A DNA stretch of 64,000 nucleotides, from the NCBI GenBank assembly GCA_016748015.1, contig JAAOMT010000376.1:1-64000 (forward strand), given 5' to 3'. Position 1 is the stretch's first letter. Each line of letters begins with the position of its first letter. The notes under the pieces were generated by a model. That model was not told the origin of the DNA, did no database searches, and saw nothing but the letters and a program-made list of their open reading frames with translations. Origin of the DNA: Geosiphon pyriformis uo1 (Eukaryota > Fungi > Glomeromycota). Positions 3,267 to 64,000 of the stretch are shown in pieces. The translations under genes were made by a program, and so were the position numbers.

Positions 3267-4722
3267 ATGCACCAGTTCTTTTTATTTAAATCGAAGAAAA
3301 TTTATTCTATCTTATTAATATTTTTACTTCAAATATTTCTTCTGGTGAAATTTCTTTGCTATTTTAACTATCTCAAATACTTATATCCTTTTTCACGCCA
3401 TTTCTTAACTTTAAAGCAAAAAAATTATAATGAAATTGAAGAAATTCTTCAGTTCTCACTTCCAGTAAAAACATTTGAAAATAACAGCATTAATTTTTTT
3501 CCAAAAAGATCAGTTGATCATAATGAAGGGTACTCTAAGAAACGAGCAATTAGCCTTAGTAACCACAATGCGATCAGGGAATTAAAATTTATAGCTACAA
3601 TTTCTAATATTCCTTATTGTTTTCCTTTAAATAACATTGGAAAATTTATAAAGCTTGAGACTAGAATTACTGGTATTTTCTGAAATTAAGTATTATTCAA
3701 TTAATTAATTTCGGCATGTGTGAAACGCATTAATTATTTTAAAAAACTTTTCCTATCATTCATACGAACATAATAGCTGATGTAATAGAAGAATCCAAAA
3801 CCGAAACAGTCATTGCATTTTTTAAAGGCCCCGATTTGACAAAAACACAATGGGAAACTAGAAAAAACCAGCTTATAACATATTCTGTCCAAGGAATGAG
3901 GAAAAATGGACTAGTAAAAGTGGATAAGGAATGGTTTATTGATGTTTTAGTTATGTGGCCGCCTCTTTTAAAAAAAGTTGAATTTTTACTTAAAGGATCT
4001 GGATATAGAAAGCTTATTTTCTGTGGACATGGTGTTGGTGGTGGTTAGTTTTTTTAGGAAAGGGAAGTACATTATATATTATTTTACTAATTTCGACACT
4101 CTTTTTCTTTAATGAAAAAAAAACAAATAGCTTATGCCGCCATAGCAGGCCTATCATTTGCAATAATCAATCTTTTGAAGTTGAATTTATCAGTTGATAT
4201 TACTATTGGTACTTTGGGTCAACCAAGAGTCGGAAATATTATGTTTGCTAGAATGATGAATGAGATAGTAAGGGTTGTAAGGATAACTCGTTACGATGAT
4301 TATTTCCCACATTTTCCTCCAATTGAAGATCAGAGCACAATAATGCAACATCACGAAAGAGAAATATGGATTGGACCAGATGATTGTGATTGTCCTCAAA
4401 ACACAAATGAAGTTATATGGGATTGTGGAAAATTAGAGAAAAATAAAGAAAAAAGGCTAGCTAGAGTACAACAGTTTATTCAAGAAAAGTTCTGGATTCC
4501 TGGTGATGATTTAGCGATTGAAAATCAAGTTAGTGAAGAAATGATTTTATCTAAAATAAATTGATTCTTTCGCAATTTTTAAGTTAATTGAACGTTATAT
4601 AATTATTATATGAATAATAATTTTAGGAATGTAATGCTGGACAATCAATTACAGACTCCAGCAGGAATAATCACCTTGGTCCGTATATTGGGATCACGAT
4701 CGGTAATTGTGATATGGCCTAA
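3267..4722 (+). CDS. Class-3 lipase-like protein, copy A (nucleophile Ser->Gly, predicted catalytically inactive); 4 exons 3267-3672, 3777-4043, 4131-4528, 4627-4722
   Basis: Spliced GT-AG model is open: N-terminal basic plus hydrophobic anchor, IAFFKGP, FCGHGVGGAYAAIAG (canonical GHSLGGA), TLGQPRVGN, RITRYDDYFPHFPP (Asp motif), HHEREIW, last exon ECNAG...NHLGPYIG (His motif). Confidence 0.9.
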
Positions 4723-7700
4723 TTACTCAATGTAATAAAATGGCATCCTTATATCAATTAATGATTTGAGTGTGAGGCAAATTTTTTAGGAATCTTGATA
4801 ATCTTATAGTAATTTTCATTTTATAAATCTCTCTTTAGAGGTTACCTATTCATGCAAACTAACTAAAGTTTATTAATCAAATTCTTATAATATAATATTA
4901 GCTTTTAAGAATTTTATTATTTAACTGTTTTATAGATAATGTTAAATTAAAAGAAATAAAATAGTAAGATTTCTTTAAAATTTAAAATATTGAAAATGTA
5001 CACTGTTTATTTTTAAATATTATGACAAGGTGAGGTCCTTCCACTATCTATTCTAGATAGAACAAAGACAACTACCCGACTGTGAAAACAATAAAATAAG
5101 GAAAATATTTTAAATATTTCGGCTAATTTCAATGCAAAAGCACATATTGACTAATTTGGAAAATTGTACCATGTAAATTTTTTCAACCACTGTAATTTTC
5201 TTTAACATTTTATGTTTTTCGCTGCTTCAAACGAGGAAATTATAGTAATTTTGAGCTGAAAGAAAGGCGCCATTTAACTTGCTAGATTCGAACACGGTAG
5301 AATATTTTTTCAGAAAGATCAAAATTTTTCAGAATTTTTAATAAAGAAAAAGGCACAAAAATTTATAAAAGGTGTCTAAAGATAGTCAAGAACACTTCAT
5401 CGTATAAGAATGGAATTGAGAGAATCAAAAATTTTTAAGCTATTTCAAAAAGTAGCCTCACCTCATTTTTCTCATATGTTTCTGAAAGTTTTGTTACGCT
5501 TTGTACTAATGAGAATCAAGAAGTTGTGAAGTCCACAAAGTAATTATTTTTCTGTTACAATCTAGTAGTAATTTTATGATGTAGCAGCATAATAACAACT
5601 TACTAATCAATAATAATCATCATTTCTTTTTGAATGAAAGATGATAATTAAAATTACAGTAATTTTATGATTTTTTGTTATTTTTCAAATATTAATTTGT
5701 TAATTTTTATCATAATAAATATATTAAAGATGATAAATTGAATAAATTTTGCTTGACTAACTGTTAAAACAATTAATAGACTAAGAAAAACTGTTCACTT
5801 TTGAAATATTTGATCTAACCAGTTATTACATGAAAAATATAAACAGATTTAATTGTATAAATATCTAAAAATAACAAACCAAAATCGAACTAATATTAAA
5901 ATATTTTTATAGTTAGTTTTACTATTTAATTATTTATTATGTATTAGTCAATTATGTTATTCAAATGACCACCTTATTTTTAGCTTAATTAGTAACTTTA
6001 ACATTGATACATTTTTAATTTCTTTTTTGTATTAATAAATCATCTTAAATGTTAAATAAAATTGGTTTTGTAATTTGAAATTAACCAATAACTTGAAAAT
6101 TGATATTAAATTTATTAATTGAGATACAGAATTACGAAATTTTTAAAACTATTTTTACATTAAAAAAGTTTTTTATTAATATTTTGTGATGAATTTTTGT
6201 AATATCCGTTTGATCAATATTTTATGAAAATTTATATCTTATATTATTCTTATTTTAATTTTTAATTATTATTTAAATCAAAACAAACTCAAAATAATGA
6301 AAAATAAAGCATTTACGCCAAAAAACAAAAATAACTGTTTTTTTAAAATTATATAAAAACACTGTTTAAATACGCTGAAATCTAAAAATTAGGCTATTAA
6401 ACATTTAAATTGATTTTATAAAATAACTTAGTATTTAAATTTAACAAAATTAAATTAGTCAAAAAAACTTGATGCATTTTTAAAAAACTAATCCATTGTC
6501 TGTTAACTATTAAATTTGAAAATAGCAAAATAATAATTTAAAATATTTAACAGCCAATAGTATTGAGAATATTTTAAAACATAATATATATGAAATTTAA
6601 GATAACAAAAAAATAGCATCAATTACTTATTTTAATTTTTCAAAAACTGTTTTTAATTAAAATGGTAATATATTATTTATTAATTGTTTTATAAATTTTT
6701 TTACATTAAATAAAATTTTCAGCCTGATTAACAATCTCTCTATTTAATCTTGTTTATTCTTATTCTTAGTCTAAATTCTGTTAGATTAGACAAATGTTGT
6801 TTCGTCTGAAAATACTACTTGATTAATAAATTTTGGTCTGCCAAAATGTTTTTTTAACCATATATATTTAATTTTATCTTTACATAAACATTGTTAAATA
6901 GTGTTTATTGTATATTAACCAACTTTTTTTGCAAGTTGTACAATCTTGGTAGCTTGCTTCATAATTGTGATTTGATTTCAGTCAGATTTTTGTTGGTTAT
7001 TTGGATCTTTTGTTTTCTTTTACTTTTTAATTCAATAGATTTACTACAATAAACATGCTTTGCTGTAGTTAGAAACTAAATCTCAGATTTTGGTGTATTT
7101 ATTTAAAAGAACAAATACATATCGCTTGTGTATTAAGAGACACACTTTAGTATGGGAACTTAATGATCATAAAATATCTGATATGGAAGATCTATCGACC
7201 TATAAAGACATGAATAATCTGTGGAATTTTTTATGGCGCCACATGTAATCTATAGAGAGCTATTCGGTTGGATACTTCGTGGTGCACTGTAAATTAAAGA
7301 TAAAAGAAGATATTATTAAAGAAATAGTTCTGAAATTGGGGTAAGTTTAGCACTTTTTAAGTATCTCAGAATTTCTGTTTATATTTTTAGGAGTTATCTT
7401 CCAATTCTTGAAAATATAATATTAATATGTATATATTCGAATACTTTTATTACAGTTTTATGGTTTATAAATTTTCTAATTATAATAACTTAAAGGTGAA
7501 ACTGCCTAATATAACATTTAAATTTGTTAGGCATATACACAGTCACGAAATAAACCTAGTTAATTTTTAAATTATTTTTAATACCATTTTAATCTAGATT
7601 ACTTATCTTTATCTCTCGGTTAATATTCCGGGATAAATATAAAAAAAGTAAATAATAAATATTTTGCAGAGGGATTTTCACAGAACTGGCATAGATCTTT

Positions 7701-7872
7701 GTCAATAACTACTTTTTTGATTAAGAATTTTAAATAAGAATGTAAGCTTCTAAATCGGGAAAGATGCTGCCTTCTGAATAGCTCTTTTCCTTTTAAATAT
7801 GAAAGCATACTTTTTTAAGATAGCCAAGTAATCTTTTCAAGTAGATTTAGGAATAGGCAGATTACGCGAAAA

Positions 7873-9331
7873 ATGCACCAGTTTTTTTTATTTAAATCGA
7901 AGAAAATTTATTCTATCTTATTAATATTTTTACTTCAAATATTTCTTCTGGTGAAATTTCTTTGCTATTTTAACTATCTCAAATACTTATATCCTTTTTC
8001 ACGCCATTTCTTAACTTTAAAGCAAAAAAATTATAATGAAATTGAAGAAATTCTTCAGTTCTCACTTCCAGTAAAAACATTTGAAAATAACAGCATTAAC
8101 TTTTTTTCAAAAAAATCAGCCGATAGTAATGAAGGATACCCTAAGAAACGAGCAATTGGCCTTAGCAACCACGATGCAATCCAGGAGTTAAAATTTATAG
8201 CTATGATTTCTAATTTTCCTTATTGTTTTCCTTTTAATAACATTGGAAAATTTATAAAGCTTGAGACTAGAATTACTGGTATTTTCTGAAATTAAGTATT
8301 ATTCAATTAATTAATTTCGGCATGTGTGAAACGCATTAATTATTTTAAAAACTTTTCCTATCATTCATACGAACATAATAGCTGATATAATAGAAGAAAT
8401 CAAAACTGAAACAGTCATTGCGTTTTTTAAAGGCCCCGATTTGACAAAAACACAATGGCAGGCTAGAAATAACCAGCTTGTAACATTTAGTGTCCTAGGA
8501 ATGAAGGAAAATAGACTAGTAAAAGTGGATCAAGAATGGTTTAATGATGCTTCAATTATGTTGGATCCTCTTTTAAACAAAATTGAATTTTTACTTAAAG
8601 GATCTGGATATAGAAAGCTTATTTTCTGTGGACATGGTGTTGGTGGTGGTTAGTTTTTTTAGGAAAGGGAAGTACATTATATATTATTTTACTAATTTCG
8701 ACACTCTTTTTCTTTAATGAAAAAAAAAACAAATAGCTTATGCCGCCATAGCAGGCCTATCATTTGCAATAATCAATCTTTTGAAGTTGAATTTATCAGT
8801 TGATATTACTATTGGTACTTTGGGTCAACCAAGAGTCGGAAATATCATGTTTGCTAGAATGATGAATGAGATAGTAAGGGTTGTAAGGATAACTCGTTTC
8901 GATGATTATTTCCCACATTTTCCTCCAATTGAAGATCAGAGCACAATAATGCAACATCACGAAAGAGAAATATGGATTGGACCAGATGATTGCGATTGTC
9001 CTCAAAACACAAATGAAGTTATATGGGATTGTGGAAAATTAGAGAAAAATGAAGAAAAAAGGCTAGCTAGAGTACAACAGTTTATTCAAGAAAAGTTCTG
9101 GATTCCTGGTGATGATTTAGCGATTGAAAATCAAGTTAGTGAAGAAATGATTTTATCTAAAATAAATTGATTCTTTCGCAATTTTTAAGTTAATTGAACG
9201 TTATATGATTATTATATGAATAATAATTTTAGGAATGTAATGCTGGACAATCAATTACAGACTCCAGCAGGAATAATCACCTTGGTCCATATATTGGGAT
9301 CACGATCGGTAATTGTAGTAATATGGCCTAA
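7873..9331 (+). CDS. Class-3 lipase-like protein, copy B (Ser->Gly); exons 7873-8278, 8382-8648, 8737-9134, 9233-9331
   Basis: Near-identical tandem duplicate of copy A, 4606 bp downstream; same motifs (GHGVGG, GQPRVGN, DDYFPHFP, NHLGPY) and intron phases. Confidence 0.9.
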
Positions 9332-10798: not shown

Positions 10799-11710
10799 TT
10801 ATTATTTTCTTTTGAAAATATGGGAATAAAAAACAAAATCATTTGGTAAAAATATCACTTAAGTTATTTTCATATGATTAAATAAAAAATAATTAATGTT
10901 AAATCCACATTTTGATACAATATTTTATTATAGATCCAAAAAATTGATGTTAGGATGTCCCTTATTAGCAAATGAGAATTTAATATCACGAACATATAAT
11001 TTAATAAATAAGTTTAAACTCAACATGCAGAACTAAATCGAACACCTCTTTCGGTATATTTAGAGATTTATGTTGTTTATGTTAATGATTTTCAAAAACT
11101 CAAACTTTATTTGTTTTAAACAGAAAAAAGTTGATACACAGCATATTTATGAAAAGGAAAATTGAACTCTACAAACTTTTCCCATCAAATTACAAAATTT
11201 TCAGATAACCTAATTCATTTAAGTAATGAAAGCTAAATTAATTANNNNNNNNNNNNNNNNNNNNTTATTATTTTCTTTTGAAAATATGGGAATAAAAAAC
11301 AAAATCATTTGGTAAAAATATCACTTAAGTTATTTTCATATGATTAAATAAAAAATAATTAATGTTAAATCCACATTTTGATACAATATTTTATTATAGA
11401 TCCAAAAAATTGATGTTAGGATGTCCCTTATTAGCAAATGAGAATTTAATATCACGAACATATAATTTAATAAATAAGTTTAAACTCAACATGCAGAACT
11501 AAATCGAACACCTCTTTCGGTATATTTAGAGATTTATGTTGTTTATGTTAATGATTTTCAAAAACTCAAACTTTATTTGTTTTAAACAGAAAAAAGTTGA
11601 TACACAGCATATTTATGAAAAGGAAAATTGAACTCTACAAACTTTTCCCATCAAATTACAAAATTTTCAGATAACCTAATTCATTTAAGTAATGAAAGCT
11701 AAATTAATTA
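10799..11710. other. Assembly gap (20 N, 11245-11264) flanked by an apparently identical ~446-bp direct duplication; likely scaffolding artefact
   Basis: 10799-11244 repeats at 11265-11710 immediately across the N run. Confidence 0.85.
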
Positions 11711-11766: not shown

Positions 11767-12504
11767 CTAATAGGGTCCCGTTTTCGGTCCTTTACGCCAG
11801 CAGCAGCAACAACAACGATTCTTACCCCATTTCTGTCCCTTACCCCAATTCTGTCCCTTACCCCAATTCTGTCCTGTACCCCAATTCTGTCCCTCATCCC
11901 AATCCTGTCCCTCATCCCAATTTTCGTAAGCCCTTTTCTGGGCAAAATTCGATTCGTTACCCCAGCTATCCCTCCCATTGCTTTCATGATGTTTTTTTCC
12001 TTTATTAGGCCATCCATGAGGCCAGTCATGATGACAATCATCATCACAGTCATCACGCCAATCACAATCACAGTCATCACGCCAATCACAATCACAGTCA
12101 TCATGATAACAGTCATCATCACAATCATGATGAGGATGTTGTTTGGGCCATTGGGATTTATGATGGTGGCAGCAACAACTACAAAAATGATTAGGATTAG
12201 GATGGGGGTTAGGATGGGGATGGGGAGGAGGAGAAGGAGGACTGCAACGAGATGGCGGATAACATGAATTTCCACCCCACCAATTGCTAGTTGGAGGTGT
12301 CTGAGGTGGTCCAAAAGAATATCCCTGATTGGGATTCGAAGGTTGTTGAGGGTATCCTGAAGTATTTTGAACATCGCCATGATTACCAGTGAAATTAGAT
12401 TGCCCGAAATCCTGAGCCTTCACACCGGTTAAAATGTCCATGGCAAGCAAAGTAAAAATAAGAAGTGCCATAAAAAATGGCTTGAAGATGAATTGATCAA
12501 ACAT
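11767..12504 (-). CDS. Predicted secreted low-complexity protein with Pro/His, Cys/Asp/His and Trp-Gly hexapeptide repeats (245 aa, single exon)
   Basis: Open 245-codon ORF, GC-rich versus flanks; signal peptide (MALLIFTLLAMDILTGVKA|Q); PPSPPPHPHPNPHPNP; FCSCCCHHH; DDCDCDWR repeats; QNWGKG-type repeats (18-bp units); C-terminal RCCCCCW. Confidence 0.8.
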   Translation of the reverse strand: MFDQFIFKPFFMALLIFTLLAMDILTGVKAQDFGQSNFTGNHGDVQNTSGYPQQPSNPNQGYSFGPPQTPPTSNWWGGNSCYPPSRCSPPSPPPHPHPNPHPNPNHFCSCCCHHHKSQWPKQHPHHDCDDDCYHDDCDCDWRDDCDCDWRDDCDDDCHHDWPHGWPNKGKKHHESNGRDSWGNESNFAQKRAYENWDEGQDWDEGQNWGTGQNWGKGQNWGKGQKWGKNRCCCCCWRKGPKTGPY

Positions 12505-18261: not shown

Positions 18262-19370
18262 AGCTATTGTGTTAGGGATGCACGCGTCCATTCCTATTCA
18301 AGGTAAAAGTTTATTGACAAGAATTTGCATCTAATATCGAGATGGATTATAACTCGATACCCTTAGTTCAGCTTGCCTCTCATCAATAGAATTATTAAAA
18401 TAACTTCCATTTGATCCGATCAACCAACAATGTGGCTGAAGTTCGAGAAAACAGCTAAAATCAGCATCCGTCCATAAACATTAATCAACACTGTAGCATC
18501 TTTTTCTTCGACAAGAATGGTCTAATTAAAAAATAAAGTTTCCTTAATGGAATTCTTTGCTCAGAGAGATCGAGCTCCTAATAAACGTTCAATTAGAAAA
18601 CCATCAAGCATTCTCCCATTTATTTGATTTTCGACTTATTCATATGAAGATTTCTCCTCTTATAATCTATCCTCTTGGCACTTTGGAATCAGACCCAGTG
18701 TTAGATATACATTTTGCTTGATGAACGAAAATTTTAAACTGACTGAAAATTTAAGGCAGCAGAAAATATATTAATTAGAACTTTTTGTACTATTAATATA
18801 TGAGTAAAATGAAGGCTAGGCTTTTCCTCTTCTAATCGTAGCAGTTCTTTGAAGCGAGGTTCCTTTATCTTTATTTCATTTATTACAGTCAATAGTTTTG
18901 AGTAGAAGGCTAAGGATTCTTTTAATATCTGTTTCGCATCCCATAAAACCACATAACGAAAGGTATCATATTCACTAATGACACGATCTGTAGCTGTCTC
19001 TCTAGTATTTTGCTAGTCATTTTATCATAATATCAAGTCGCGTTTCTGCAACTTTCCTGTATACTAACAAATATAATTATTTTCGTCCTCTGACTAATCT
19101 TGCATAACTGCTCTAGTAAAAAATTCTAAAGATAACTCCATCTCAGTTTTAACTTTCAAGCCTATTTCTAAATATTGCATGATAAATTTGCCTATTTCGG
19201 GCAAAAGAAAATAATTGATTGCAACGAAACTTTCAAAGACACTTGAAGCTGTTAAGTTTTTAACCTAAATTGAGCCAGTATACAAAAATTCTAAGATTAA
19301 TTTCAAGGCCAAAGTAGACACATTCTGAAAATTAAAATCTTTTCACGACTCTTTCAGACCCTCAATCAAA
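18262..19370 (-). pseudogene. Pseudogene copy of the BTB-SPRY gene (5'-truncated, stops, deletions, replaced internal segment)
   Basis: ORF fragment 18734-18952 (VLWDAKQILKESLAFYSKLL...EEEK) matches the 25778-27193 protein; flanking DNA aligns to BTB (LKLILEFLYT followed by GAG->TAG stop) and SPRY (CWLIGSNGSYFNN) segments. Confidence 0.85.
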
Positions 19371-24824: not shown

Positions 24825-25777
24825 AAATTGGTATTTCAATTTTATATTCTTTGGCCTTCGTATTTTCTTCCAAAAATTTTTCTCCAATATAATAAAATTT
24901 AGGGTACAGATAATAAATCATGATTTTTATTTTTTGTGAAACTTCAGATTGTTCCAATTTTTTGGGAGATCAAGAAAAACCATGAATTCTTTGATTCACA
25001 TTTAAGTTTGGTGTTAAGTTTTTAATGACATGATTTTGTGGCAATAAGCGAATTGGATCACAAACTTCTTGGACTTGTCTCCTTAAATTGTAAATCACAT
25101 ACAATTTCCGCTTTTTATTATGTTCGATTCACAAAATTTGACAATAATTCTAATGCTTAATGCTATTAAACCGAACAAATTTAGCCAATTCCTTCCGCAG
25201 TAGACTTTCCAAAAAGGTTAAGCTGAATCTCTTAATTTTAGACCTTAAGAGTTGAGTTAATAATTAATGACAGAAAAATGTTGACAAAAAGTACAATCCA
25301 CAACTTTGTGAACATTACTAATTAAAATTTGTATTGAAATTTTTTCAGCTGTCACGCGGAAAACTAATAAATATGTTGTGTCTAAATCACAATTGCTCGA
25401 ATTTGGAATTAACACTGCGAGAATTACATATCAACAAATATACTCCTATATTAATGTGTACATACACATTCTGTTAAAAGTTGAATTTATTTGTTTGAAG
25501 TTAAATAGTCGGTTAAATCGTAACACAAGTTTTTTAAAGTGGATAATTATGAACTTGATGCATTTTCATTGAAAGAGCGGGAAAAGGTATTATACTAGGA
25601 TGTGACACATCCCAATTAAATAATAATAACAGGTTAATAACAAGTTTGTACACATTATGATTCCTTTGAACTGGTTAAACACTTTGAACTCTAAAGAGGT
25701 TAAATACCCTTGCTAGTTGTAGCTATTTCTTTTTACACGCTTGAAAAACCATTTTAATCATTCCTTTGAAATTAGAA

Positions 25778-27193
25778 ATGGCACTTCTTGCCGACCTTAA
25801 ACTCATGGTGAATAATCCTAAATTTAGCGATCTCAAAATTAAATGTGGAAATTGGAATGAAGGTGACGAGATACTCTATGCATCTCGTCTTCACTTGGCA
25901 GCTCGATCTGAATTTTTTGAAAGAATGCTTTTTAATGGAATGCGTGAAACAACTTCCAACGAAATTACTTTTCCCAACTTGTCTACTTCGGCTTTGAAGT
26001 TAATTTTGGAATTTTTATATACTGATTCAATTGAGGTCAAGAACTTAACAGCCTCCAGCGCATTCGACACTTTTGTTGCAGCCAATTTTTTTCTCTTGCC
26101 AGAAATAGAAAAAATTGTTACACAATATGTGGAAATAGGCTTGAAAGCTGAAAGTGCAGTGGATTTAGCTTTAGAATTTTTCACTAGGGCAGTTGAGCAA
26201 GATTACTCAGAGGACGAAAATGAATTATATTTATTGGTATACAGGAAAGTTGCAGAAACGCCACTTGACACTATCCCATATAATAAAATGACTGGAAAAA
26301 TACTAGAGAAACTCCTTTCTGAAACTAAAAATCATATCATCAGTGAATATGATATCTTTCGTTATGTAATTTTATGGGGTGCGAACCAGGTATCAAAAGA
26401 ATCGTTTGCCTTCTACTCACAACTATTGCCGGTAATAGATGAAATAAAGATAAAGGAACTTCGCTTCAAAGAACTCCTAAGATTAGAGGAGGAAAACTCT
26501 AACCTTCACTCTACTCATAAATTAGTAGTACAAAAAGTATCAAGCATTCTCCCGTTCATTGATTTTCGACTTATTCCTATGAAGATTTTTGCTCTTATAA
26601 TCGATCCTCTTAACATTTTAGAATCAGACCAAGTTCTAAATTTATATCGATATTTTGCAATTATCGAAGGGAATCGAAAAATTGAATGGGATCCAAAAAT
26701 CGCTCCGCAAAATTTCAAACTGACTGAAAATTTCACGGTTGCAGAAACTAAATCAAATGAAAGCTCTTTAGATAAACGTTTGCTAGGAGCTCGATCTCTC
26801 AGAGCGAAGAATTCCATAAAGGGAACTGGATTCTTTGACTGGACTATTCTTATTGAAGAAAAAGACGCTACATTGTGGATTGGAGTTTGTGGGGCGGACG
26901 CTGATTGCAGCCGTTTCCTCGGACTTCAGCCAAATTGTTGGTTAATTGGATCAAATGGAAGTTATTTTAATAATTGTGTTGTTGGGAGGCAATTTGAGGT
27001 GATATTTAATAAAGGGGATCGAGTTACAATCCATCTCGACATAAGACAGCGAACCCTCGCTTTTTCTATTAATGAAGTCCGGTATCCTACCATATTCACA
27101 GATCTTGTCAGTGAACTTTACCCTGCGGTCTGTTTGACTATGAATGGACGTGTGCGCCTTTGCAATAATAGCCAACAAAGATATTCCTTTTGA
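25778..27193 (+). CDS. BTB/POZ-(BACK)-SPRY/B30.2 domain protein, single exon
   Basis: BTB motif FSDLKIKC...YASRLHLAARSEFFERMLFNGMRE...LILEFLYT; SEYDIFRYVILWG; SPRY-like WIGVCG...FNKGDRVTIHLDIRQRTLAFSIN...LYPAVCL; first ATG at 25778. Confidence 0.9.
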   Translation: MALLADLKLMVNNPKFSDLKIKCGNWNEGDEILYASRLHLAARSEFFERMLFNGMRETTSNEITFPNLSTSALKLILEFLYTDSIEVKNLTASSAFDTFVAANFFLLPEIEKIVTQYVEIGLKAESAVDLALEFFTRAVEQDYSEDENELYLLVYRKVAETPLDTIPYNKMTGKILEKLLSETKNHIISEYDIFRYVILWGANQVSKESFAFYSQLLPVIDEIKIKELRFKELLRLEEENSNLHSTHKLVVQKVSSILPFIDFRLIPMKIFALIIDPLNILESDQVLNLYRYFAIIEGNRKIEWDPKIAPQNFKLTENFTVAETKSNESSLDKRLLGARSLRAKNSIKGTGFFDWTILIEEKDATLWIGVCGADADCSRFLGLQPNCWLIGSNGSYFNNCVVGRQFEVIFNKGDRVTIHLDIRQRTLAFSINEVRYPTIFTDLVSELYPAVCLTMNGRVRLCNNSQQRYSF

Positions 27194-41273: not shown

Positions 41274-42761
41274 CTAATATAAGTCCCTACAATCACCCAT
41301 TCTGATCCCAAAATAGGGACCAAAGTGATTATCCCTGCTGGAGTCTGTAATTGGTTGTCCAGCATTACATTCCTAAGATTTTATTTATATAATAAAAATA
41401 TAAGGTTTAAGCAGGTTCATAGATTTCGAAAGAAAGAATTTATTTTAAATAAATTATTTCTTCACTAACTTTATTTTCCATCGCTAAATCATCACTAGGA
41501 ATCCAGAACTTTTCTTGAATAAACTGCTGTAATCTATATTGCTTTTTTTCTTTATTTTCCTCGAATTGTCCACAATCCCATATAACTTCATTTGTGTTTT
41601 GAGGACAATCGCAATCATCTGGTCTAATCCATATTTCTCTTTCGTGATGTTGCATTATTGTGCTCTGATTTTCAATTGGAGGAAAATGTGGGAAATAATC
41701 ATCGTAACGAGTTATTCTTCTAACCTTTACTATTTCATTCATCATTCTAGCAAACATTATATTTCCGACTCTTGGTTGACCCAAAGTACCAATGGAAAAA
41801 TCAACTGATCCGTCTAAGAGATTGATTGGGACTTTAACTATACGGAGAAGATTGACTATTGCGTATAATAGGCCTGTTATTGTGGCATAAGCTGTTTGTT
41901 TTTCCATTTTAAAGGAACAGAGTCTTAAAATTAGTAAACTAAGTATATAGTACCTTCCTTTCCCCTTAAAAGAACTAACCGCCTCCAACACCGTGTCCAC
42001 AAAAAAGAATTTTTTTATATCCACTAAGCACTACTGCATTGTAGACTTGAGATAAAAGAGGATTCAACATAGCTGAAGCATCATTAAACCATTCTTGATC
42101 CACTTTTACTAGTCTATTTTCCTTCATTCCTTTGACATTAAATGTTACAAGCTGGTTTTTTCTAGCTTCCCATTGTGTTTTTGTGAAATCGGGGCCTTTA
42201 AAAAACGCAACTATTGTTTTAGTTTCAGTTTCTTTGGTTACATCAGCTATTATATTCGTGAAAATTTGGAGAAAATTTTTTCAAAAAATTAATTCGTTTA
42301 ACACATGCCGAAATTAATTGATTGAATAATACCTAATTTCAAAAAATACCAGTTATTTTGTTTGGTAAATTTATGAATTTCCCAATTAGATTACGATGAT
42401 GGCAATAAGGATAATTAGAAGCCGCAGCTATCAATAGTAATTCTAAACGATCGAGTTCATCGCTATTGGCAAGGCTAATTACTCGTTTTTTAGGGTACCC
42501 TTCATTACTATCAACTGATCTTTTTGAAAAAAAATTAATGCTGTTATTTTCAAATTTTTTTATTGGAAGTGAGAATTGAGAAATTTCTTGAATTTCATTA
42601 TAACTTTTTTGCTTTATGATTAAAAAATGGCGTGAAAAAGGATATAGGTATTTGAGATAGTTGAAATGGCAAAGAATTTTCACCAGAAGAGTTATTTGAA
42701 ATAAAAATATTAATATGGTAGAATAAGTTTTCTTCGATTTGAATAAAATAAACTTTTGCAT
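41274..42761 (-). CDS. Class-3 lipase-like protein, copy D (Ser->Gly), 4 exons
   Basis: Exon 2 open when read by hand (VAFFKGPDFT...LFCGHGVGG); exon 3 and last exon (DNHFGPYFGIRMGDCRDLY*) homologous to C. Confidence 0.9.
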
Positions 42762-45540: not shown

Positions 45541-47112
45541 ATGTCACAAAATATATTAATACTTCTTTTCTTTTCTCTTCTAATCATTTGCTTTTCATTT
45601 TTCAAAGATCAAAAAGAAAACTTTTTAGCTGAAAAACTTGCTCAACTAACAAAAAAAACAAATGCAACAAAATGCCATAAAACAATTTTCCAACTTAAGT
45701 CAAAATTTAAGCGCCGAGGAAAAATTTTTCACTATAATGAACAAAAACAACAAGAGCCACTATTGATTAGTAGTGGAGGATTTGGGAAGAAAATAGAAGC
45801 TCCAAAAATGCTGATAAAAGATTACAAGATTCTTAAACTTTTCAAAGAAATGGCATATACGGCAAATGAGCCCTATTGTAAAAAAGAAAATGATGATATA
45901 ATTGGTAAAGGATTCATTGGTACGATAATTTTAAGTAAAATATTTGACTTTGAAACTTTCTTTCATATTTTAATCAAATTGTTTATTAATTTTACATAAC
46001 AAATGATTCGATTAGGTAGAGTTTTTGTTAAGATTGAATCGCGACAAATTACTGGAATTCTGAGAGGAAAGTCTTTGGAAATAATTACTGTTATTTTTAA
46101 TTAAAATATAATCAAACTTTTTTTTATACTCCAAAAGTATTTTTTCGTCTTTAGTTTAAAAAAAATCATATTCTCTTAATCACTAGGGTTAGAAGTGACT
46201 AAAAGCCAAATGGAAAAAATTAAGTTCACACTAGGAAACTTCTTCCCCGATATGGGAGTAAAAAGTAACCTCAGAATTGATTCAAATTGGTGGAATTCAT
46301 GGCCAGAGGATTGTTTAACATCAGTTAACGACAAAATAGAAGCCTCTATAAACACATTAAAAAATGGAACAGAGGCGAATAAGCCAATTCATGTTTTTCT
46401 AACTGGACATGGTATTGGTGGATGTAAGCAATTATTTAAAATTTTAATTCATTTTTTTAAAGTAAAAAGTTAAAAAGTTAACAGCTGGGATCCTCTAACT
46501 ATATATTTTAATAATTATGATATTAGTTTATGCACAAATATACGGCATATACCTAACACTGTATACAAGATATGATGAAAAGATTGCTATTACTATTATA
46601 ACTTTTGGCTCTCCACGTCCACGAGATGTTCAGCTTGAAGCTGAATTCCAGCAAAAACTTGAAGGTAATCTCAGAGTCTACAGGATCACACATAGTAATG
46701 ACTATTTCCCCCATTTTCCAAAAAAATCACGTGATGATAAACCATATATGTACCGTGGCACTGAGTATTGGATTCCAGATAGGAATTGTAATTGTGAAGA
46801 TCCTGATGCTTCCAGACTTCTTGGTGAAGGTTATGATATTATCTATGAATGTCCGGGATTTTCACGACGGGATAAAAAAAAATATGACGAAAATCAGGTA
46901 TGATTTGGTTTTTATTATAAAAAAAAGCTTTTATATAGAAAGCTAATTTAATTTATTAGTTTAGAATGATATTAAGTAAATATAAATTTTGTCTTTTTTT
47001 GTAGGGATGTAATTTAGGCACTGATGGTGAAGGAATAAGAGCTCATTATGGCCCTTATTTTGGAGTGACATTTGGAAATTGCGAAAATAATTATCCTATT
47101 GGTAGAATTTAA
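45541..47112 (+). CDS. Divergent class-3 lipase-like protein, copy E (GHGIGG; Ser->Gly), 5 exons; intron 2 needs a non-canonical GA donor, otherwise a pseudogene
   Basis: Signal/anchor MSQNILILLFFSLLIICFSFF; MAYTANEPYC; GILRG; FLTGHGIGG; TFGSPRP; RITHSNDYFPHFP; AHYGPYFG. Confidence 0.8.
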
Positions 47113-48475
47113 ATTGAAAAGTTTTCAAAAAGTTTAGAAACTGTGAAGAAAAAGTAAAAATATTTCATCATATGCAGTGTGGAAAGAAATATTTTGCCCT
47201 TTTTGTAAATAATTTTTCAAATAGCTAGTTTAAACCACTAATTATATTAATTAACGATTAGTAAGGGATTTGTTCAACACCTCTTTTTGAGTATCATCTC
47301 GCATCGTCTTTTCATAGATTTTATTCAATTCTTTTTAACGAAATCCGGAACACTTGCCCACTTCTCGATCATAAAATGCTCTAATTCTAAAAGAATGCTT
47401 TAGCAACACACAACTATTATTTTTGGATAATTATTTTGTTTAAAATGCCAGACACGTCTCGCCATTTTTAGATTACAGGTAAGTGTTTTTGCAAAATTTC
47501 TCAACATAATAAGAGCCTGCATTATTTGCTGGAAGCAGAACAGACTCGTTTTTCCCTTTAAGCAACTCCAGCGGATTCAAATATTTTTCCACAATTTTTT
47601 GGGAACTTGTGAAGAATAACTAAAAATTATTCATGAATTAATATTTTTTATCGTGAAGTCAACTAAAATATAGAAAAGAAATTATAAATAATCACTTGAG
47701 AGAAAACTTAGTTTTCTTTTCTTAGTTCTCAAAGCTTTTTATCATTCAAAATTAAGATACTTATTAAAAATGTTATAAGCCTTATTAATTTTTATTTGCT
47801 ATCGAAAGGCTTGATAATAATAATCTTGATATCTTGAAGTGAAACTCATTTTATAACATCTAATATAGAGAGAGCTTTTAGGTCGCGATGGTTTCATTCT
47901 TAAATCTAATTTAAAGGTTTTTTGGATGTTTCAACCCAATTTAGTAAACCAAATTGACATGAAGAAGCTACTCGAAGCAGGATATAACGTTTTTTAACAT
48001 GTGTCAAAGGTAAATGGTTAATTTAACCATATTCAAATCGTGAGAATATCGGTTTCTTAAAAAAACCAACTTTGTAAGAAAACATACTTGAAATATCTAT
48101 CTATCACAGTAGGAGAGAAAGAATCAATTTATTACTATTTCGGAATAAATATATAAAAGATTAAATAATAAATATTTACAGCCTGGTAGTAGAGATTTTC
48201 GCTATTTTGTAAAATTAACACATGTAATAATAACAGAACTAGACCAAAGTTTATAAAGTCATATATTCTTTGTCAAAAACTACTTTTTTAAGAAAAATAA
48301 AATAAAATTATTAATTGATTAAGTGAGAATTTTGAATAAAAATATATGTTTCTAAAATCGGGCACGATGCTACCTTCTGAATCGGGCTTTTCTCTTTAAA
48401 TACAAGAGCATACTTTTTCAAGATATTCGTCTAATCTTTTCAAGTAGATTTAGGAATAGGCAGATTACGTGAAAA

Positions 48476-48760
48476 ATGCAAAAGTTTATTTTATTCAAAT
48501 CGAAGAAAACTTATTCTACTATATTAATATTTTTATTTCAAATAACTCTTCTGGTGAAAATTCTTTGCCATTTCAACTATCTCAAATACCTATATTCTTT
48601 TTCACGCCATTTCTTAATCATAAAGCAAAAAAGTTATAATGAAATTCAAGAAATTTCTCAAATCTCACTTCCAATAATAACATTTGAAAATAACAGCATT
48701 AATTTTTTTTCAAAAAGATAAGTTGATGGTAATGAAGGGTACCCTAAAAAACGAATAATT
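48476..48760 (+). pseudogene. Truncated lipase-like copy F (exon 1 only, premature stop TCA->TAA at 48719-48721)
   Basis: N-terminus nearly identical to copy D (MQKFILFKSKKTYSTILIFLFQITLLVKILCHF); homology ends abruptly at ~48760; upstream ~47615-48475 is an inverted copy of the C/D upstream region. Confidence 0.88.
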
Positions 48761-49875
48761 GAAGAGAAACATTTGAATACTCTCATTAAATATCCAACAT
48801 GTCTGTAGCATATTTTTTTTTCTTCTATTTTAAAATCAATAGTGTTGTCACCCAACAAAATTTTTTATCATAAGTTGACCTACTATTATTATTAATAATT
48901 TCATCTAAAATTTATCTTGTGTAAAATATACAACTGCATCAATGAATTTGAATAGATCAAATAAAAAGTTTTAGCCTTTATTTAAAATGCTATAGTAGTT
49001 ATAAATATTTTCTAAAAATTTATTTATAAAAGCCTAATAAATGATAAGAATCTAGGAAAATAATTGCAAAGTTTTGCTATTGTTTGCATTCAAGGAAGAT
49101 TTAAAGAAACTTTATAATACTCTGTAAGTTTAACCTTTTGATTTTTCAATTAAAAAGTAAAGTCCTTCTAAAAGGGCGTTGGCTTTTATAAAAAATAAAA
49201 ATATTATTTAAATTAGATATTTCAATTATAAACTACATGTAATATCATACGCAGTCTTATCTTTACAGAATATTTCAGGTTGCCTCCACCCACACCATGA
49301 CCCTTAAATATAACCCTGAATTTTTCGATACAATTGAGACAATATAACTTGTACATTCATAACCCAAATTTTGTCAACCCATGTATTATCAGGAGGCCTA
49401 TTAAAGAGAGGACCAAAATCAAATTTATTAAATATTTTGGTCGCATTTTTCATTCGCTGTGACTCAAGTTTTTTCCTCGAAAATAGATTATAATTTCTTT
49501 TTCTTTTAGGTCTAGATGAATATCACCTATAGAAAGTAATTAAATCAAATTCAAAGGAAATCTAAAAAAAGTTGCATTTAAGTCTCCAGCCTGAGAATAC
49601 CTTTAAAAAAAATTTAGTTATCAATTGTACCGGGAACCTCGTTTCCAATATCAATTTTATGGCTACAGTACCCTAGTGCTATGCGGGCAAGTAAATCCCA
49701 TGGCTACTTATGAGGAAGGAGAGACCTCAATAATTTTCTGCATTTTTAATGTAACTTGAGGTTTTCTTTTGTTGGATGTGAATTTAACTAATGGCTGATG
49801 TTATATTTGTTTTCTTTAGGGTTCAACTTATAAATTCAAAAGATTTGTGGGAGGTAAAAAATAATATTATCACTA

Positions 49876-50533: not shown

Positions 50534-51918
50534 TCAAAAAAAATTATCGCATTGACCAAAAATAACTCCAAAATATGGTCCATGATGAGCATTGACACCA
50601 ATTCCATTTGTTCCAGCGTTGCATTCCTAAATTTTATAAAGTAGAGTCAAAATTTAATTTATCATATAACTTAAAACATTCAACACTTGCCATATTTTCA
50701 ACAGCTTTTTGTGAAGCCTTTTTTGCAGAAGAACATTTGTACACCTGATAATTTTTTTCATTTTTGATCTTTTTATCAGCTGTTTTGTCATAGCACTCAC
50801 AATCTTCAATAATCCAGTACTCAGTCTCATGATGCACGTATTTGATACCAGATTGAGATTTTTTAGGAAAATGTGGAACATAGTCATTGGTATGGGTGAC
50901 ACGAAATATTGGCATTAATGATGCTAATCTTTTAGCATAATAATCATTTCCAATCCTTGGCTGTCCAAATGTGACAACTGTGATAGAATTTATATATTTG
51001 TCGAATGGATTTTGTATTTTTATTGTCCCTAAAATCATCATTGCCAATAACATGGCATACGCTATGAGAAAGAATAAAATTCCAAAATTTAATTTCTGAA
51101 ACCATAATTATTTTAAAAAAATAAATTATGAGAGCATCACTTACCACCTCCAATACTATGACCAGTTACAACTATAGAAACGTTATTTTTAGGAATCAAT
51201 TGGCTTAATAGTAATACCTTTGCGATTAATCTATCTTTAAGTGGGGTATCAATTACTTTGTGTAAATTTGTATCAATAAGATGTGGGGGATTATCTCGAA
51301 GTTTCGTGAAATAACATTTTCTGGATTGCCATTGACTTAGCGTCAATTCAGGTCCTTTTCAGAATTTTAATAAAGCTTTTTAGAAACTTGAAAAAATTTT
51401 TAATTCATAAAATAAATTAATATATCGTACCTCGAGCGTATATTAATATATCTTGACTTTCTGGGTCCACAAAAGCGTCAGCTTTAAGAAAGATGAAGTC
51501 AGGATGAAAATATTAAAACTCAAAATATCATCTGAACTGAATAAATATCAAAGGAAAGCGGCTTACTTATTATTTGTGGACTCCCAGCTCCAATTTCGTC
51601 ACTTTTAGAACAATATGGCGTATTGGCTACATGAGCCATTCGCTTCAAAAAGGCTAAAGTCATAGGATCGGAGACTGGTACTATGGGAAATGTATTTTGC
51701 TTCAAATCGAAACCTTTTCCGCTACTGATAAATATTGGTTCTTTATGCCTTGAATCTTTAGACCAAGAGATTCCACTATCTTCTAAAGTGAGTTGTGAAG
51801 ACGTAAAATTTGATGATAATCTTTCTGCAAGTACTTGTGTATTGTCATTAAAGAGACTCATTATCAGTGTCAATATATTGTTGAAGAAAATACAGTATTT
51901 GAAATCCGAAGAAATCAT
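50534..51918 (-). CDS. Class-3 lipase, copy G; the only copy with an intact nucleophile (GHSIGG); 5 exons, last intron GC-AG
   Basis: MAHVANTPYC; LIYARGP; VVTGHSIGGAYAML; TFGQPRIGN; RVTHTNDYVPHFP; HHETEYW; AHHGPYFG; Ser-Asp-His all present. Confidence 0.9.
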
Positions 51919-53305
51919 TTTTAGGAATATATTCTAAAATGTATATTCAAGTTCGCGTTAATAAAAAAAGATTTATTTAAATTATTAATTCATCAGGCTC
52001 AATACCATATTTATTATTTCTTTTCGGAATTATGATGATTAGATACTTCTGGAAAAAAATACTCGCAATAAAAGCTAACTCACTAATTTGAAAATTTTTT
52101 TTATGCAGGATTTTTGAATTAATCCTTAGGTGACGATTTTGCTGATCAGATATTATTGGAAAGGGCCGAAAGTAACAGATTTTATTGATAATCAATATAA
52201 CATGTGTCATAAATTGCTCCAAAACATTTTTCTACTCCCCTTTTTAACGATCACCCATAGGATTTAGATTCGAACTACCGGTAAAGGACTTTCTCCGCAA
52301 GAAACGCCTTTAGCTTTCAACTCTTATGCTTGGGGGTCGTTATCTTTTTGAAAGGAAAGAATTCTCTAAACATGCTGTCGTAAAAGCTTAGCGTAAAACT
52401 TTGCATCAATGATACGCCGAAAACAAAATAAGCTAGTTTTTCCCTTCATACAAAACCACCAGACGCAAAAATTTTTTGTAAGATCCTTTGGTCTTTAAAG
52501 ACCTGTACCAATGTTCAATTATGTGTCAGGAACATAATTAATTGTTGTTTCTTCAGAAATCAATGTTTTTTTCCAGCTATCGTCAAAATGAAATTTAGCC
52601 CATTGGACACTTTTCTGTTTTTGAGCCTTTGTCAGCATGTGAGTAGTAATTGATAGATTTTTTGTATATCCAATCGATTTTAAATGTTTGCCAATTGTGT
52701 AATATAAGCTTTCTACTCCCTATCTATCTAGTTTAGTAGCAATTTTTCGCAGAGACACTGAATAATCTTTATGAAAATATTATTCGATACATATGCCGTA
52801 ATCTTGTGAAGAAAATTATTGCCTTTGTGTTCAATTATACTTAATTTTTTACTTTCTATCTAGGATTTTGAGACAGGCATCTTGGTGAATTTATTTGATC
52901 TCATCCCAGAAATATAATAGCTTTTGCTTGTTACGTTTCTTGACCAACAGATTCAACTCCAAACGTAAAATTATACATAACATTGCAAATTAATTCTATA
53001 TTGGGAATAAAATCTTTCACATGGGTACTCAATTGGTAAAAAATGAAAAGGTTATATATGCTAAATATTTATTCTTTTTTATGAGACAAATAAAAGCGGA
53101 TATTAGTAGGGTGTAATATTATAAGCTAGTTAAAAATTTTCTATAATTAAAATTTGGTAAAAGATTTAAAGGGTTCAAATCTTTTTATAAAAAAATTGAT
53201 CAAAAAAATAATGGCCTTTGAGATATTTGAAAACAATTTCTTTGTTAAAAATAATTTCATATTAAATTTTCCAATTATTGTTAGAGAGAAAATTAAAATT
53301 GTTTT

Positions 53306-53975
53306 CCTCTTGTCCTCTCAAAGATTTGAGATAAAATGGTTTTATTTGCTCTCATCACAATCTTTAATTTTTCTATTTTTATCTTTCTTTTTATAATATC
53401 ATAAAGAATTGAATTTAAAACAAAATTGATGTCAAAAAATTGGGAAATATGATTTTGGGATTATGTTTTCTTATGAAACAAAATATAAAATAATTCATTA
53501 ACTAACAGGTTAATAAAAATTTAGTTTTTTAAATTTTTCTTATTTTTATTCTATATAATCAAAAATGATCGAGAGCAGGAAAATTAGTTATTTCAAAAAA
53601 AAGATATCGAATAAATGAAAAAGTGAAAAAATAAAATAAAATTGTCTGCCTCTTGTCCTCTCAAAGATGTGAGATAAAATGGTTTTATTTGCTCTCATCA
53701 CAATCTTTAACTTTTCTATTTTTATCTTTCTTTTTATAATATCATAAAGAATTGAATTTAAAACAAAATTGATGTCAAAAAATTGGGAAATATGATTTTG
53801 GGATTATGTTTTCTTATGAAACAAAATATAAAATAATTCATTAAATAACAGGTTAATAAAAATTTAGTTTTTTAAATTTTTCTTATTTTTATTCTATATA
53901 ATCAAAAATGATTGAGAGCAGAAAAATTAGTTATTTCAAAAAAAAGGATTTCGAATAAATGAAAAAGTGAAAAAA
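53306..53975. repeat. Near-perfect tandem duplication, ~343-bp period
   Basis: cctcttgtcctctcaaaga... starts at ~53306 and ~53649, with few substitutions between the copies. Confidence 0.9.
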
Positions 53976-54095
53976 AAATTTATAAACTTTTTGATTAATT
54001 GAACTTTCGTTTTAACATCTAATTTTAAGTAAGTTATGCTAATTATTCTTTAGAAAAATTTAATTTTAAAATCAAGTTTTGAAAAATTCTTATTT

Positions 54096-55664
54096 TCACC
54101 ACCATCTCTGCCACATTGGAGCGCAATAACCCATCGTAACACCAAAATATGGGCCTTTATGTTTCATATATCCAATTTCTTTTGATCCCATTTGACTAGC
54201 ATTACATTCCTAAAACATGATCAAATAATAATTTCAAAATACTTTTATTTTAATGTTACATTCAAAAATAAATAATTTCAAAAAGAGAATTTACAAATTT
54301 TTTCTACAAACCTCATTTTCTCCGGCAAAAGCTTTCTCTTCATAAAATCCATCACATTGATAAAGAATATAACTCCCGTCAATTATAATCGGTTTTCGAT
54401 CACCAGTTGCACTATTCAAACAATCACAATTCAAGAAGGATAACCAAAATTCTTGTTCATGATGATAATAGCTATCATCTCGTGGATATTGAGGAATTGG
54501 ATCAATAGTATGTGTCAAGCGGTAAACTTTCAAAAGCTGATTCACAAGTAATGCAAAAATTTTGTTTCCTATTCGTGGTTGACCATAGGTTTGAACCAAT
54601 AATTGTACACCATGTAATTCATTCATTCGACTAAATTCCGCAGCTTCAACTTCTTTATAAAATGCCAAGGCTGCCAGGACGGCGTATGCTATGATAAAAT
54701 TAGATTAAATTTATGAAAAAAAAAAACTCCCAAAAAAAAATCTGCTGAAACAACTTTCTTCAAATCTTAAAGAATAGCTGAATAAATAACTTACCACCCC
54801 CTATTCCGTGACCTGTAAAAATTACATTTGTCTTGAAATTTATTTTTCTTGGTAAATTCATTTCCCTTTTTAATTTTCTAATTTTTTGAAATAATTTTGG
54901 TAACATTAATTCTACATCTTGATAGAAAATTTTATCCACTTTCATCTCTCGAGTCGAATGAAATCCAGAATGATGATAAGTAATTAAAATATTTTCTCGT
55001 GTTTCCCACTCTTTGATCGTCATTTCTCTTCCTTTGAAAAACGCTATGATTTCGTTTTTTTGTTCGTTTATTATTACATCAACTAATTTTGAATTTAAGT
55101 ATTTAAAAATGATATGAGAATAGAGTTCAAAATGTTTTAGAAAGTGATTAAATTTCAATTAGCAAAAAAAAATTATTTTTTTAAATCACCATTAGCACCC
55201 ACTACCACTTTGCCAATTTCATTATCTGGAAGACAGTAACCATAATTTGCGAATCGTGCATAGCTTGTCAAATAATCAATGATTAAATGATCTATAACAG
55301 GATTTTTGGGAGGAGAACTAGCCGAACGACCAAAGGATCTTGGATATTCAGCAATTGAGTATGTTTGACTTTTATTATCACTTGATCTGGTTTTCGAGAA
55401 ATATTAATTTTTTTTTTAATGAAAATTTTTGATTAAAATATTTTACCTTTGAAAAAGATGATTCATTCCTCTGGTAAAATTTTTTAAATGGTTTTCCTTT
55501 TTGACCCCACTTAAAATTTTCTCTTCTTTTTGATTTAAAAATTTTTTTATCATTATCTCTTTAAGAAAACAATACATAAAAAAAAAAGTTAAAAAAATTA
55601 TCCCAAAAAGCAAACTTAATTTTCTTTTATAATTTTTATATCCTGTTCTATTAAAAAAGAACAT
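54096..55664 (-). CDS. Divergent class-3 lipase-like protein, copy H (GHGIGG; Ser->Gly), 5 exons
   Basis: Type II anchor (KRKLSLLFGIIFLTFFFMYCFL); YARFANYGYC; IAFFKGR; IFTGHGIGGAYAVLAAL; TYGQPRIGN; RLTHTIDPIPQYP; KHKGPYFG; spliced model open. Confidence 0.88.
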
Positions 55665-57335: not shown

Positions 57336-58767
57336 TTAAGAGAAGGAAAACTGAGTACAGTCACCGATCGTTGTACCAAAATAAGGACCAAAGTGATTAT
57401 CCCTGCTGGAGTCTGTAATTGTTTGTCCAGCGTTACATTCCTAAAAATTATTATTTATTCATAAAATAAAAATATAAAATTTTATTAAGCTTTTATAAAT
57501 TTCAGAAGAAGAAATAATTTATATTATAGATAAAATTATTTCTTCACGAACCATATTTTCCATCGCTAGATTATCACCAGGAGTCCAAAACCTTTCCCGA
57601 ATAAATTGTTGTATTCTAACTAACTTTTTTTCTTGATTATCTTCTAATTGTCCACAATCCCATATAACCTCGTCTGTGTTTTGGGAACAATTACAATCTA
57701 TTTCAATCCATATTTCTCTTTCATGATGTTGCATTATTGTGCTCTCATTTTCAATTGGAGGAAAATGTGGGAAATAATCATTGTAATGAGTTATTCTTAT
57801 AACCCTTACTATTTCATTCATCATTCTAGCAAACATAATATTTCCGACTCTTGGTTGACCCAAAGTACCAATAGAAATATCAAGTGGTAAATTTGCATCC
57901 AAAAGATTCATTATTGCAAATGATAGGCCTGTTATGGCAGCATAAGCTATTTATTTATTTTTCATTAAAAAAATGTAAGAATGAGTAAAACAATATATAA
58001 TATATGTATATATATATATATATATATACATAATATCATTTCCTCTCTTAAAAAAACTAACCGCCACCAACGCCATGTCCACAAAAAAGAATTTTTTTAT
58101 GTCCAGTCTCCTTTACTGCCACTATGACTTTTTCCAAAAGCATATTCATCAGCGATAAAACATCAAGAAACCAATCTTCATCTACTTTTACTAGGTTGTT
58201 TTTCTTCATTCCTACGACCTCAAATGTTGTAAGATTATTTTTTCTAGCTTCCCATTCTATCGTTGTCAAATCGATGCCTTTAAAAATAATAACGATTGTT
58301 TTGGTTTGGTATGAAGTTATTACATCAGCTATTATATTGTATGAATAAATAGATAAGAAAATTTTTTTAACACAAGTTAATTTGTTTCATAAATAATACT
58401 TTTTTCATAAAATACCAATGATATTATTCGGCATTGAATTCCCAAGCCCATAAAGTGGAATGCAATAAGGAATATTGGAAAGGGCAGCTATCGCTCTTAG
58501 TTCCTCAATTTCATCGTAGTTGCTAGAATTAATTGCTCTTTTCTCTGGGAACCCTTTATTACTATCATCTGATCTTTTTAAAAAAAAATTAATATTGTTA
58601 TTATCAAAATTTTTTACTGGATAATTTTTTTGCTTTATAGTTAATAAATAATTTGAAAAAGGATATGTATATTTAAGATAGTTGAAATAGTAGAAAATAT
58701 TTGCTAGAAAGATTATTGATAAGATAGAACAAATTTTCATCGATTTGAATAAAAATAACTGTTGCAT
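57336..58767 (-). CDS. Class-3 lipase-like protein, copy I (Ser->Gly), 4 exons
   Basis: MQQLFLFKS start homologous to paralogs; LFCGHGVGGAYAAITG; TLGQPRVGN; NDYFPHFPP; DNHFGPYFG. Confidence 0.88.

Positions 58768-62217: not shown

Positions 62218-62220
<3 letters not shown>

Positions 62221-62250
<30 letters not shown>
62221..62250. repeat. (AT)n microsatellite upstream of copy J
   Basis: Direct reading. Confidence 0.9.
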
Positions 62251-62252
<2 letters not shown>

Positions 62253-62674: not shown

Positions 62675-62830
62675 ATGCAAAATTTCTTCTTAATCAAATC
62701 GAAGAAAATTTTTTTTCCAATTTTATTAATATTCTTATTTCAATTAATTTTTCTGGTGAAATTTTTTTGTTATTTCAACTATCTCAAATACACTAGTCCT
62801 TTTTCAAACCATTTATTAACTATAAAGCAA

Positions 62831-62882
<52 letters not shown>

Positions 62883-64000
62883 TTCAAGAAATCCCTAAGC
62901 TCTTACTTCCTGTAAAAACATTTGAGAATAACAGTATTAAATTTTCCTCAAAAAGGTCAGTTGATAGTAATGAGGGTTACCCTAATAAAAGAGCAATTGG
63001 CCTTCACAACTACGATGAAATCAAGGAACTAAGGGCTATAGCTCAGTTTTCCAATATTCCTTATTGCCTTCCTTATAATGAAATTGGGGAATTCATATTG
63101 CAACCGACTAGAATCACTGGTATTTTATGAAATTGAGTATTATTCAATTAATTAATCCTGGTTTAAGATTCTTATCTATTTATTCATACAAACATAATAG
63201 CCGATGTAGTAGACTCAATCGAAAGCGAAACACTCGTTGCTTTTTTTAAAGGCCCCCACTTGACAAAACCACAATGGCAAACTAGAAAAAACGAGCTTAT
63301 AACATTTAGTATCGCAAGAATGAAAATAAATGAACTAGTAAAAGTGGATCTAGAATGGTTTAAGGATGTTTTAAGGATGATGAGGCCTCTTTTATTTAAA
63401 ATCAGGACTTTACTAAAACTTAATGGATTTAAGAAAATTCTTTTCTGTGGACATGGTGTTGGTGGCGGTTAGTTTTTTTAAGAGAATGAAGCATATTATA
63501 TACATTAAGTTGACTAATTTTTATTTTTTCTTTTAAATGAAAAAAAAATCAAATAGCTTATGCCGCCATAGCAGGCCTATCATTTGCAATAATGAATCTT
63601 TTGGATTTAAATTTATCACTTGATATTTCTATTGGTACTTTGGGCCAACCAAGAGTCGGAAATATAATGTTTGCTAGAATGATGAATGATTTCGTAAAGG
63701 TTATAAGAATAACTCATTACAATGATTATTTCCCACATTTTCCTCCAATTGAAAATGAGAGCACAATAATGCAACATCATGAAAGAGAAATATGGATTGA
63801 AATAGATTGTATTTGTCCCCAAAACACAGAAGGGGTTGTATGGGATTGTGGACAATTAGAAGAAAATCAAGAACAAAGGCTATCTAGATTGCAACAGTTT
63901 ATTCAAGAAAAGTTCTGGATCCCTAGTTATAATCTAGCGGCGGAAAATAAGGTTTGTGAAGAAATAATTTTATCTAAAATAAATTGTTTCTTTCGAAATT
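62675..64000 (+). CDS. Class-3 lipase-like protein, copy J (Ser->Gly), with a 16-Asn tract; last exon lies beyond the window
   Basis: Exons 1-3 homologous to A and I; LFCGHGVGGAYAAIAG; TLGQPRVGN; NDYFPHFPP; (AAT)16 at 62831-62878. Confidence 0.88.

Follow-up and report, generated by a model that had tools for sequence, protein, structure and literature searches.

The closest described relatives of the genes analysed here, a cluster of class-3 lipase-like genes in a 64-kb window of the Geosiphon pyriformis genome (contig JAAOMT010000376.1, positions 1 to 64,000; "the window" denotes this whole stretch), are the secreted class-3 lipases of Rhizomucor miehei and Rhizopus (PF01764; PDB 3tgl, 6a0w). 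The Geosiphon family shares with them the fold (Z about 25), the pre-pro layout, the positions of the catalytic Asp and His and the elbow geometry motif, but its nucleophile Ser is replaced by Gly or Ala, the oxyanion Ser/Thr is gone, VHxGF has turned into VDxxW, an extra Cys-rich loop is present and the copies number in the hundreds. The class-3 lipase-like domain of the plant immune proteins EDS1, PAD4 and SAG101, whose role is non-catalytic, matches the structural model of window gene D with Z scores of 16-19. These proteins are, however, cytosolic or nuclear, carry an EP domain and form a small family, whereas a Pfam scan of the Geosiphon proteins revealed only Lipase_3 and no EP domain, the protein ending after the His segment. 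Neuroligins, neurotactin, glutactin and yolk proteins likewise keep a hydrolase fold without catalysis and use it for binding (PMC3531081), but they are animal proteins of other hydrolase families with few copies, and we claim homology to the Geosiphon family for the fold only. The best functional analogy is provided by the RALPH effectors of Blumeria powdery mildews, an expanded, secreted family with a catalytically dead enzyme scaffold and a shared intron in a biotrophic fungus (PMC7857584). They differ in having an RNase fold and in being pathogen effectors with demonstrated inactivity and known receptors.

The initial annotation had described ten Lipase_3 paralogs in the window, and ten class-3 lipase-type elbow motifs were indeed located, in genes A (+4025), B (+8630), C (-37332), D (-41998), E (+46405), F (-49302), G (-51163), H (-54813), I (-58080) and J (+63449). 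Nine of the motifs read GHG, with a GGN codon at the nucleophile position; only gene G has GHS, encoded by AGT. The prevalence of the Ser-to-Gly change was thus correctly recognised, but the earlier count of eight GHG motifs among nine elbows had left out the broken gene F, which also has GHG. A splice artefact as the origin of the elbow Gly was ruled out: the intron is positioned behind the GG pair of the elbow, four codons 3' of the nucleophile, so that splicing is unable to restore Ser. The oxyanion motif is altered as well, as had been noted. The residue at this site is P, I, R or L in the intact window copies and Ser or Thr in none of them, G included. The catalytic Asp and His and the cysteines are retained in the window copies.

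The assignment to the lipase fold is supported by Lipase_3 (PF01764) profile matches of 47.9 and 79.3 bits versus a cut-off of 22 and by the predicted structure of D, which had a predicted local distance difference test score (pLDDT) of 91.5. The model of D matched Rhizopus lipase with a Z score of 25.9 over 233 aligned residues (root-mean-square deviation 2.4 Å), and the comparison with Rhizomucor miehei lipase, which the initial annotation had proposed, gave a matching fold with a Z score of 25.4. In an alignment of 206 family domains, the nucleophile position is occupied by Gly in 156 and by Ala in 14, and the oxyanion column contains Pro in 71, Lys in 26, Arg in 11 and Ser in 9 domains. 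Proline has no backbone NH to offer at the oxyanion hole. The change of VHxGF into VDxxW involves a replacement of His by Asp in 131 of these domains, and the lid contains a conserved Trp-x-x-Arg. Judged from these residues, catalysis appears to be broken at two places, the nucleophile and the oxyanion residue, and the GHG family very probably does not consist of ordinary lipases.

The conservation of Asp, His and Cys seen in the window extends to the family. Asp, Arg, Glu and Cys are invariant across 96 members at about 30% identity, the triad Asp being kept in 96 of 96 and the triad His in 78 of 87. With the Asp invariant and the His kept in 90%, a new chemistry is conceivable in which the His-Asp pair works with no nucleophile supplied by the protein, a mode found in some decarboxylases of the alpha/beta-hydrolase fold; the tomato protein MKS1, for instance, has Ala at its elbow and is active as a decarboxylase (PMC3531081). 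We consider this very improbable, as the oxyanion residue is often Pro, the His has become Asn in 7 of 87 members and His is often retained in non-catalytic hydrolase-fold proteins too (PMC3531081).

The published genome of G. pyriformis comprises 129 Mb in 795 scaffolds (PMC9453076). Locus tags of G. pyriformis are borne by paralogs as well as by the window's own products. To estimate the family size, a genome census was performed with a DNA pattern composed of the elbow and the splice donor, using the reversed pattern as control. Gly elbows gave 244 matches compared to 9 in the control and Ala elbows 39 compared to none, and W-S-N codons were found in 50 matches, 42 of them coding for Ser. 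These counts are lower bounds; they refer to domains, not genes, and some broken copies are among them. Geosiphon has at least about 280 genes of this family without the elbow Ser, and the copies are 25-35% identical. A profile search covered 1.84 billion representatives, and the best 150 of 1880 matches were examined. Among these 150, all 26 non-canonical matches that were traced (partly chosen from the longest branches) belonged to Geosiphon, and the four foreign matches were all ordinary Ser lipases. This suggests a lineage-specific family within the best 150 of 1880 matches, a scope at which absence from Ambispora, the sister group of Geosiphon (PMC11134847), is not proven. Word-index searches reached only Geosiphon proteins and three plant lipases, a metagenome scan yielded only two unrelated lipases, and literature searches, whose scope did not include the genome paper, found no paper on this family. 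The family is real, large and apparently undescribed. Expanded pseudoenzyme families are already known as a kind, and it is the version on a lipase scaffold that is apparently undescribed; a dead-enzyme family of this size on that scaffold has so far been seen only in the one fungus known to engulf cyanobacteria, the host of Nostoc. Domain counts would misread the family as a boost in fat digestion, since most copies can hardly be ordinary lipases. Metagenome contig Ga0247613_10024904 (L054:1-1210, 55% GC) carries an unrelated class-3 lipase-like frame with a GHG elbow that lacks the oxyanion Ser/Thr; Ser-to-Gly copies have therefore arisen elsewhere too.

Canonical lipases with FRGT, H-x-GF and GHSLGG motifs are also present in the Geosiphon genome (L004, L005, L007-L009). 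Two introns, the elbow one and that preceding the last Cys segment, are common to these lipases and the odd family, as are the HxGPYFG tail and, apparently, the first core intron. In a tree calculated with the nucleophile masked, the odd family formed one clade (support 98 and 95), and it was most likely derived from the canonical Geosiphon lipases. End branches in the family are near 0.8 changes per site, and the loss of Ser is therefore old. Ser copies are scattered inside the clade, and gene G is nested among Gly copies, three well-supported nodes deep. The possibility that G is a surviving ancestral lipase was rejected, as its grouping with the canonical lipases had a p value of 6e-5 in the approximately unbiased test, a result that is not final given the long branches. 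Because of its nested position, its AGT codon one transition away from GGT and its RGP at the oxyanion site, the simplest reading is that G has probably regained Ser in a still-dead site, and it is not usable as an ordinary-lipase control. Most Ser elbows in the genome use AGY codons, which are separated from the GGY codons of Gly by one transition, so that loss and regain of Ser are easy. The Gly, Ala and regained-Ser copies represent a natural series for studying the change from enzyme to binder.

According to the initial annotation the family is maintained under selection, and a ratio of nonsynonymous to synonymous substitution rates (dN/dS, omega) near 1 would have spoken against this. Pairwise whole-gene dN/dS values ranged from 0.6 to 1.1, which taken alone would be of that kind. 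The segments behaved differently, the core after the elbow having values of 0.13-0.7 and the lid-plus-helix segment exceeding 1 in 13 of 15 pairs; the whole-gene value near 1 thus averages over two regimes. With our own implementation of tree-based codon models, omega was about 0.5 overall, with about half of the codons at 0.05-0.1 and about 40% fitting an omega of 1, and in the A-type subfamily full open models were obtained at 20 of 23 loci. Since half of the codons are this constrained and 20 of 23 loci are open, purifying selection on the core is secure, and the earlier claim holds for the core, not for the whole gene.

The fast-changing part was analysed separately. The positive-selection test for exon 2 gave a likelihood-ratio test (LRT) statistic of 18.4, the highest value among 48 simulations under the null being 6.0; in two other subfamilies the statistic was 8.4 and 11.6. 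The flagged sites (A numbering) are helically spaced and located mainly on helix 1 (108, 111, 115) and on the helix that precedes the nucleophile strand (194, 197, 201, 206, 209). Diversifying selection on these two helices is probable, not proven. In addition, the family copies are mosaics. Gene B contains a run of exon-2 alleles shared with C and D, whereas its introns match those of A at 287 of 288 sites; A and B differ at only one of these intron sites and at about 25 sites in exon 2. At silent sites, exons 3-4 of gene I hardly differ from a copy on contig C19, whereas exons 1-2 do. That A and B are an assembly duplicate is unlikely, as 47 codons differ.

Most models of the family have a hydrophobic N-terminal segment, as judged by hydropathy only, followed by a stalk and the domain, with a dibasic site before the domain in all but H. 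This layout resembles that of pre-pro-lipases and suggests that the products are exported. Our preferred reading, held tentatively and with slightly less than an even chance of being right, is that the family consists of secreted non-hydrolytic binding proteins which form a variable interaction repertoire. In the Geosiphon lineage, a secreted class-3 lipase of canonical type would early have lost the nucleophile and the oxyanion hole. Tandem duplication, exchange of segments and the death of some copies would then have turned the dead lipase into a family of at least about 280 genes. The products would be synthesised as pre-pro-proteins with an N-terminal hydrophobic segment, a stalk and mostly a dibasic site before the domain, and would function as binders without hydrolytic activity, either extracellularly or within the symbiotic compartment. 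Fold and ancestral pocket would be preserved by the constrained core, an acyl chain may still be held in that pocket, and the fast-changing positions on helix 1 and the pre-nucleophile helix would set the specificity, provided that, as we infer, the variable sites are surface-exposed and the pocket is open. The target might be the surface or proteins of another organism, be it Nostoc, other microbes or a plant. The earlier proposal of an expanded family of surface or secreted binders rather than enzymes is thus upheld as far as a large, selected, probably exported family with lost catalytic machinery is concerned.

Several observations limit the case for a diversifying binder repertoire. Where Ser is no longer required, the strained elbow favours glycine, and the elbow Gly by itself is therefore weak evidence for binding. 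The N-terminal signal segment of gene G is weak by hydropathy. The whole-gene positive-selection LRT was 75, yet nulls with segment-specific trees gave 6-38; the simulation showed inflation by segment heterogeneity, and the whole-gene p-values were discarded. Recombination finer than simulated could also inflate the positive-selection signal, and a stricter tree-free count of positive selection was not significant. The latter result would suit a family expansion that was largely neutral, in a genome rich in repeats where selection acted on nothing but folding and reading frame, as would the whole-gene dN/dS values, the 40% of codons at an omega of 1 and the broken copies and fragments (gene F and the partial copy at 47610-48760). 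We regard such a neutral origin as quite unlikely in view of the Asp, Arg, Glu and Cys invariant over 96 members, the 20 of 23 intact loci and the frames kept despite branches near 0.8 changes per site, a degree of constraint that calls for a useful product.

The kept lipase fold, including the lid Trp and the following Arg, would also be compatible with nutritional lipid carriers, in which the dead pocket captures acylglycerols or fatty acids of the partner and passes them to uptake systems. A lipase with Ser mutated to Ala binds oleic acid (PDB 1gt6), and arbuscular mycorrhizal (AM) fungi import host lipids (PMC9620820). A carrier function would, however, not call for divergent copies in the hundreds, the best 150 of 1880 matches included no such family from other AM fungi that depend on lipids, and the fast change is concentrated on two helices. 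Lipid shuttling, which we rate as unlikely, therefore fits less well than a variable repertoire, the latter being preferred because of the hundreds of copies at 25-35% identity, the mosaic exons and the fast change on two helices. Fast surface change would also suit an arms race in which the proteins are decoys or regulators of true lipases, absorbing partner inhibitors or pairing with the active-type lipases that coexist in the genome. This is again very improbable, as a large sequence distance separates the dead copies from the active lipases, which they greatly outnumber, and no inhibitor is known.

Returning to the variable repertoire, a more specific version is unlikely: several hundred lineage-specific dead-lipase receptors, diversified by duplication and exon-scale exchange, might use surface lipids or proteins to recognise and sort microbes, cyanobacterial partners or others, and so help to pick or hold Nostoc in the only known fungus-cyanobacterium endosymbiosis. 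The link to Nostoc comes solely from the family having been seen so far in one fungus. In any case the family yields specific candidates, amenable to expression, for a role in recognising the partner or handling lipids in the Geosiphon symbiosis.

Nine of the ten window genes are intact, and F is a truncated pseudogene, so that the earlier statement that the reading frames are open applies to all but F. Open spliced frames with GT/GC-AG introns were obtained for A, B, C, D, G, H and I. Gene A (3267-4722, + strand, 388 aa, GHG) has four exons (3267-3672, 3777-4043, 4131-4528, 4627-4722), with the Gly codon at 4031-4033 and KGP at the oxyanion site, and gene B (7873-9331, +, 389 aa) is its tandem copy. 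Genes C (36617-38089, -, 397 aa) and D (41274-42761, -, 399 aa; NCBI model G9A89_001454, P0005, the basis of the fold model) are intact and have GHG. Gene E (45541-47112, +, 386 aa, GHG) has five exons, and its frame is open with a GA-AG intron (46067-46186). As each of the six readable paralogs has the same GAAAGT donor at the corresponding position (L068-L073; seven of seven including E), this is probably a real non-canonical intron not recognised by the annotation, and a splice-site pseudogene is unlikely. A partial inverted copy of the 5' region of D (47610-48760, +) contains codons 1-95 only (48476-48760). Gene F (49284-49760, -, 5' limit approximate) retains the GHG elbow, but has stops and frameshifts and lacks exons 3-4. 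Gene G (50534-51918, -, 358 aa; G9A89_001456, P0003) is the sole GHS copy and has RGP at the oxyanion site. Gene H (54096-55664, -, 389 aa, GHG) is intact with KGR at this site, and gene I (57336-58767, -, 372 aa) has GHG. The last exon of gene J (62675-64000, +, GHG) lies beyond the window, and a complete 401-aa frame is present on the contig (L038).

Many NCBI models contain two to four lipase domains (P0001, P0002, P0015, P0017 and others), some of which may be true tandem-domain proteins and others fused neighbours. P0061 is joined to malonyl-CoA decarboxylase and P0106 to Kelch repeats, probably by annotation fusion. An assembly gap (11245-11264), 1.9 kb past gene B, is flanked by two identical 446-bp stretches and therefore looks like an unmerged overlap; disruption of a gene was ruled out, as the gap is outside all lipase genes. 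At 11767-12504 (-), a 245-aa open reading frame with a signal-like start, His/Cys/Asp-rich and Trp-Gly repeats and no Pfam match looks like a secreted repetitive protein. An intronless BTB plus SPRY gene is located at 25766-27193 (+), with an inverted relative of part of it at 18330-19335. Between G and H (53290-53978), a 346-bp unit is tandemly duplicated with 97% identity.

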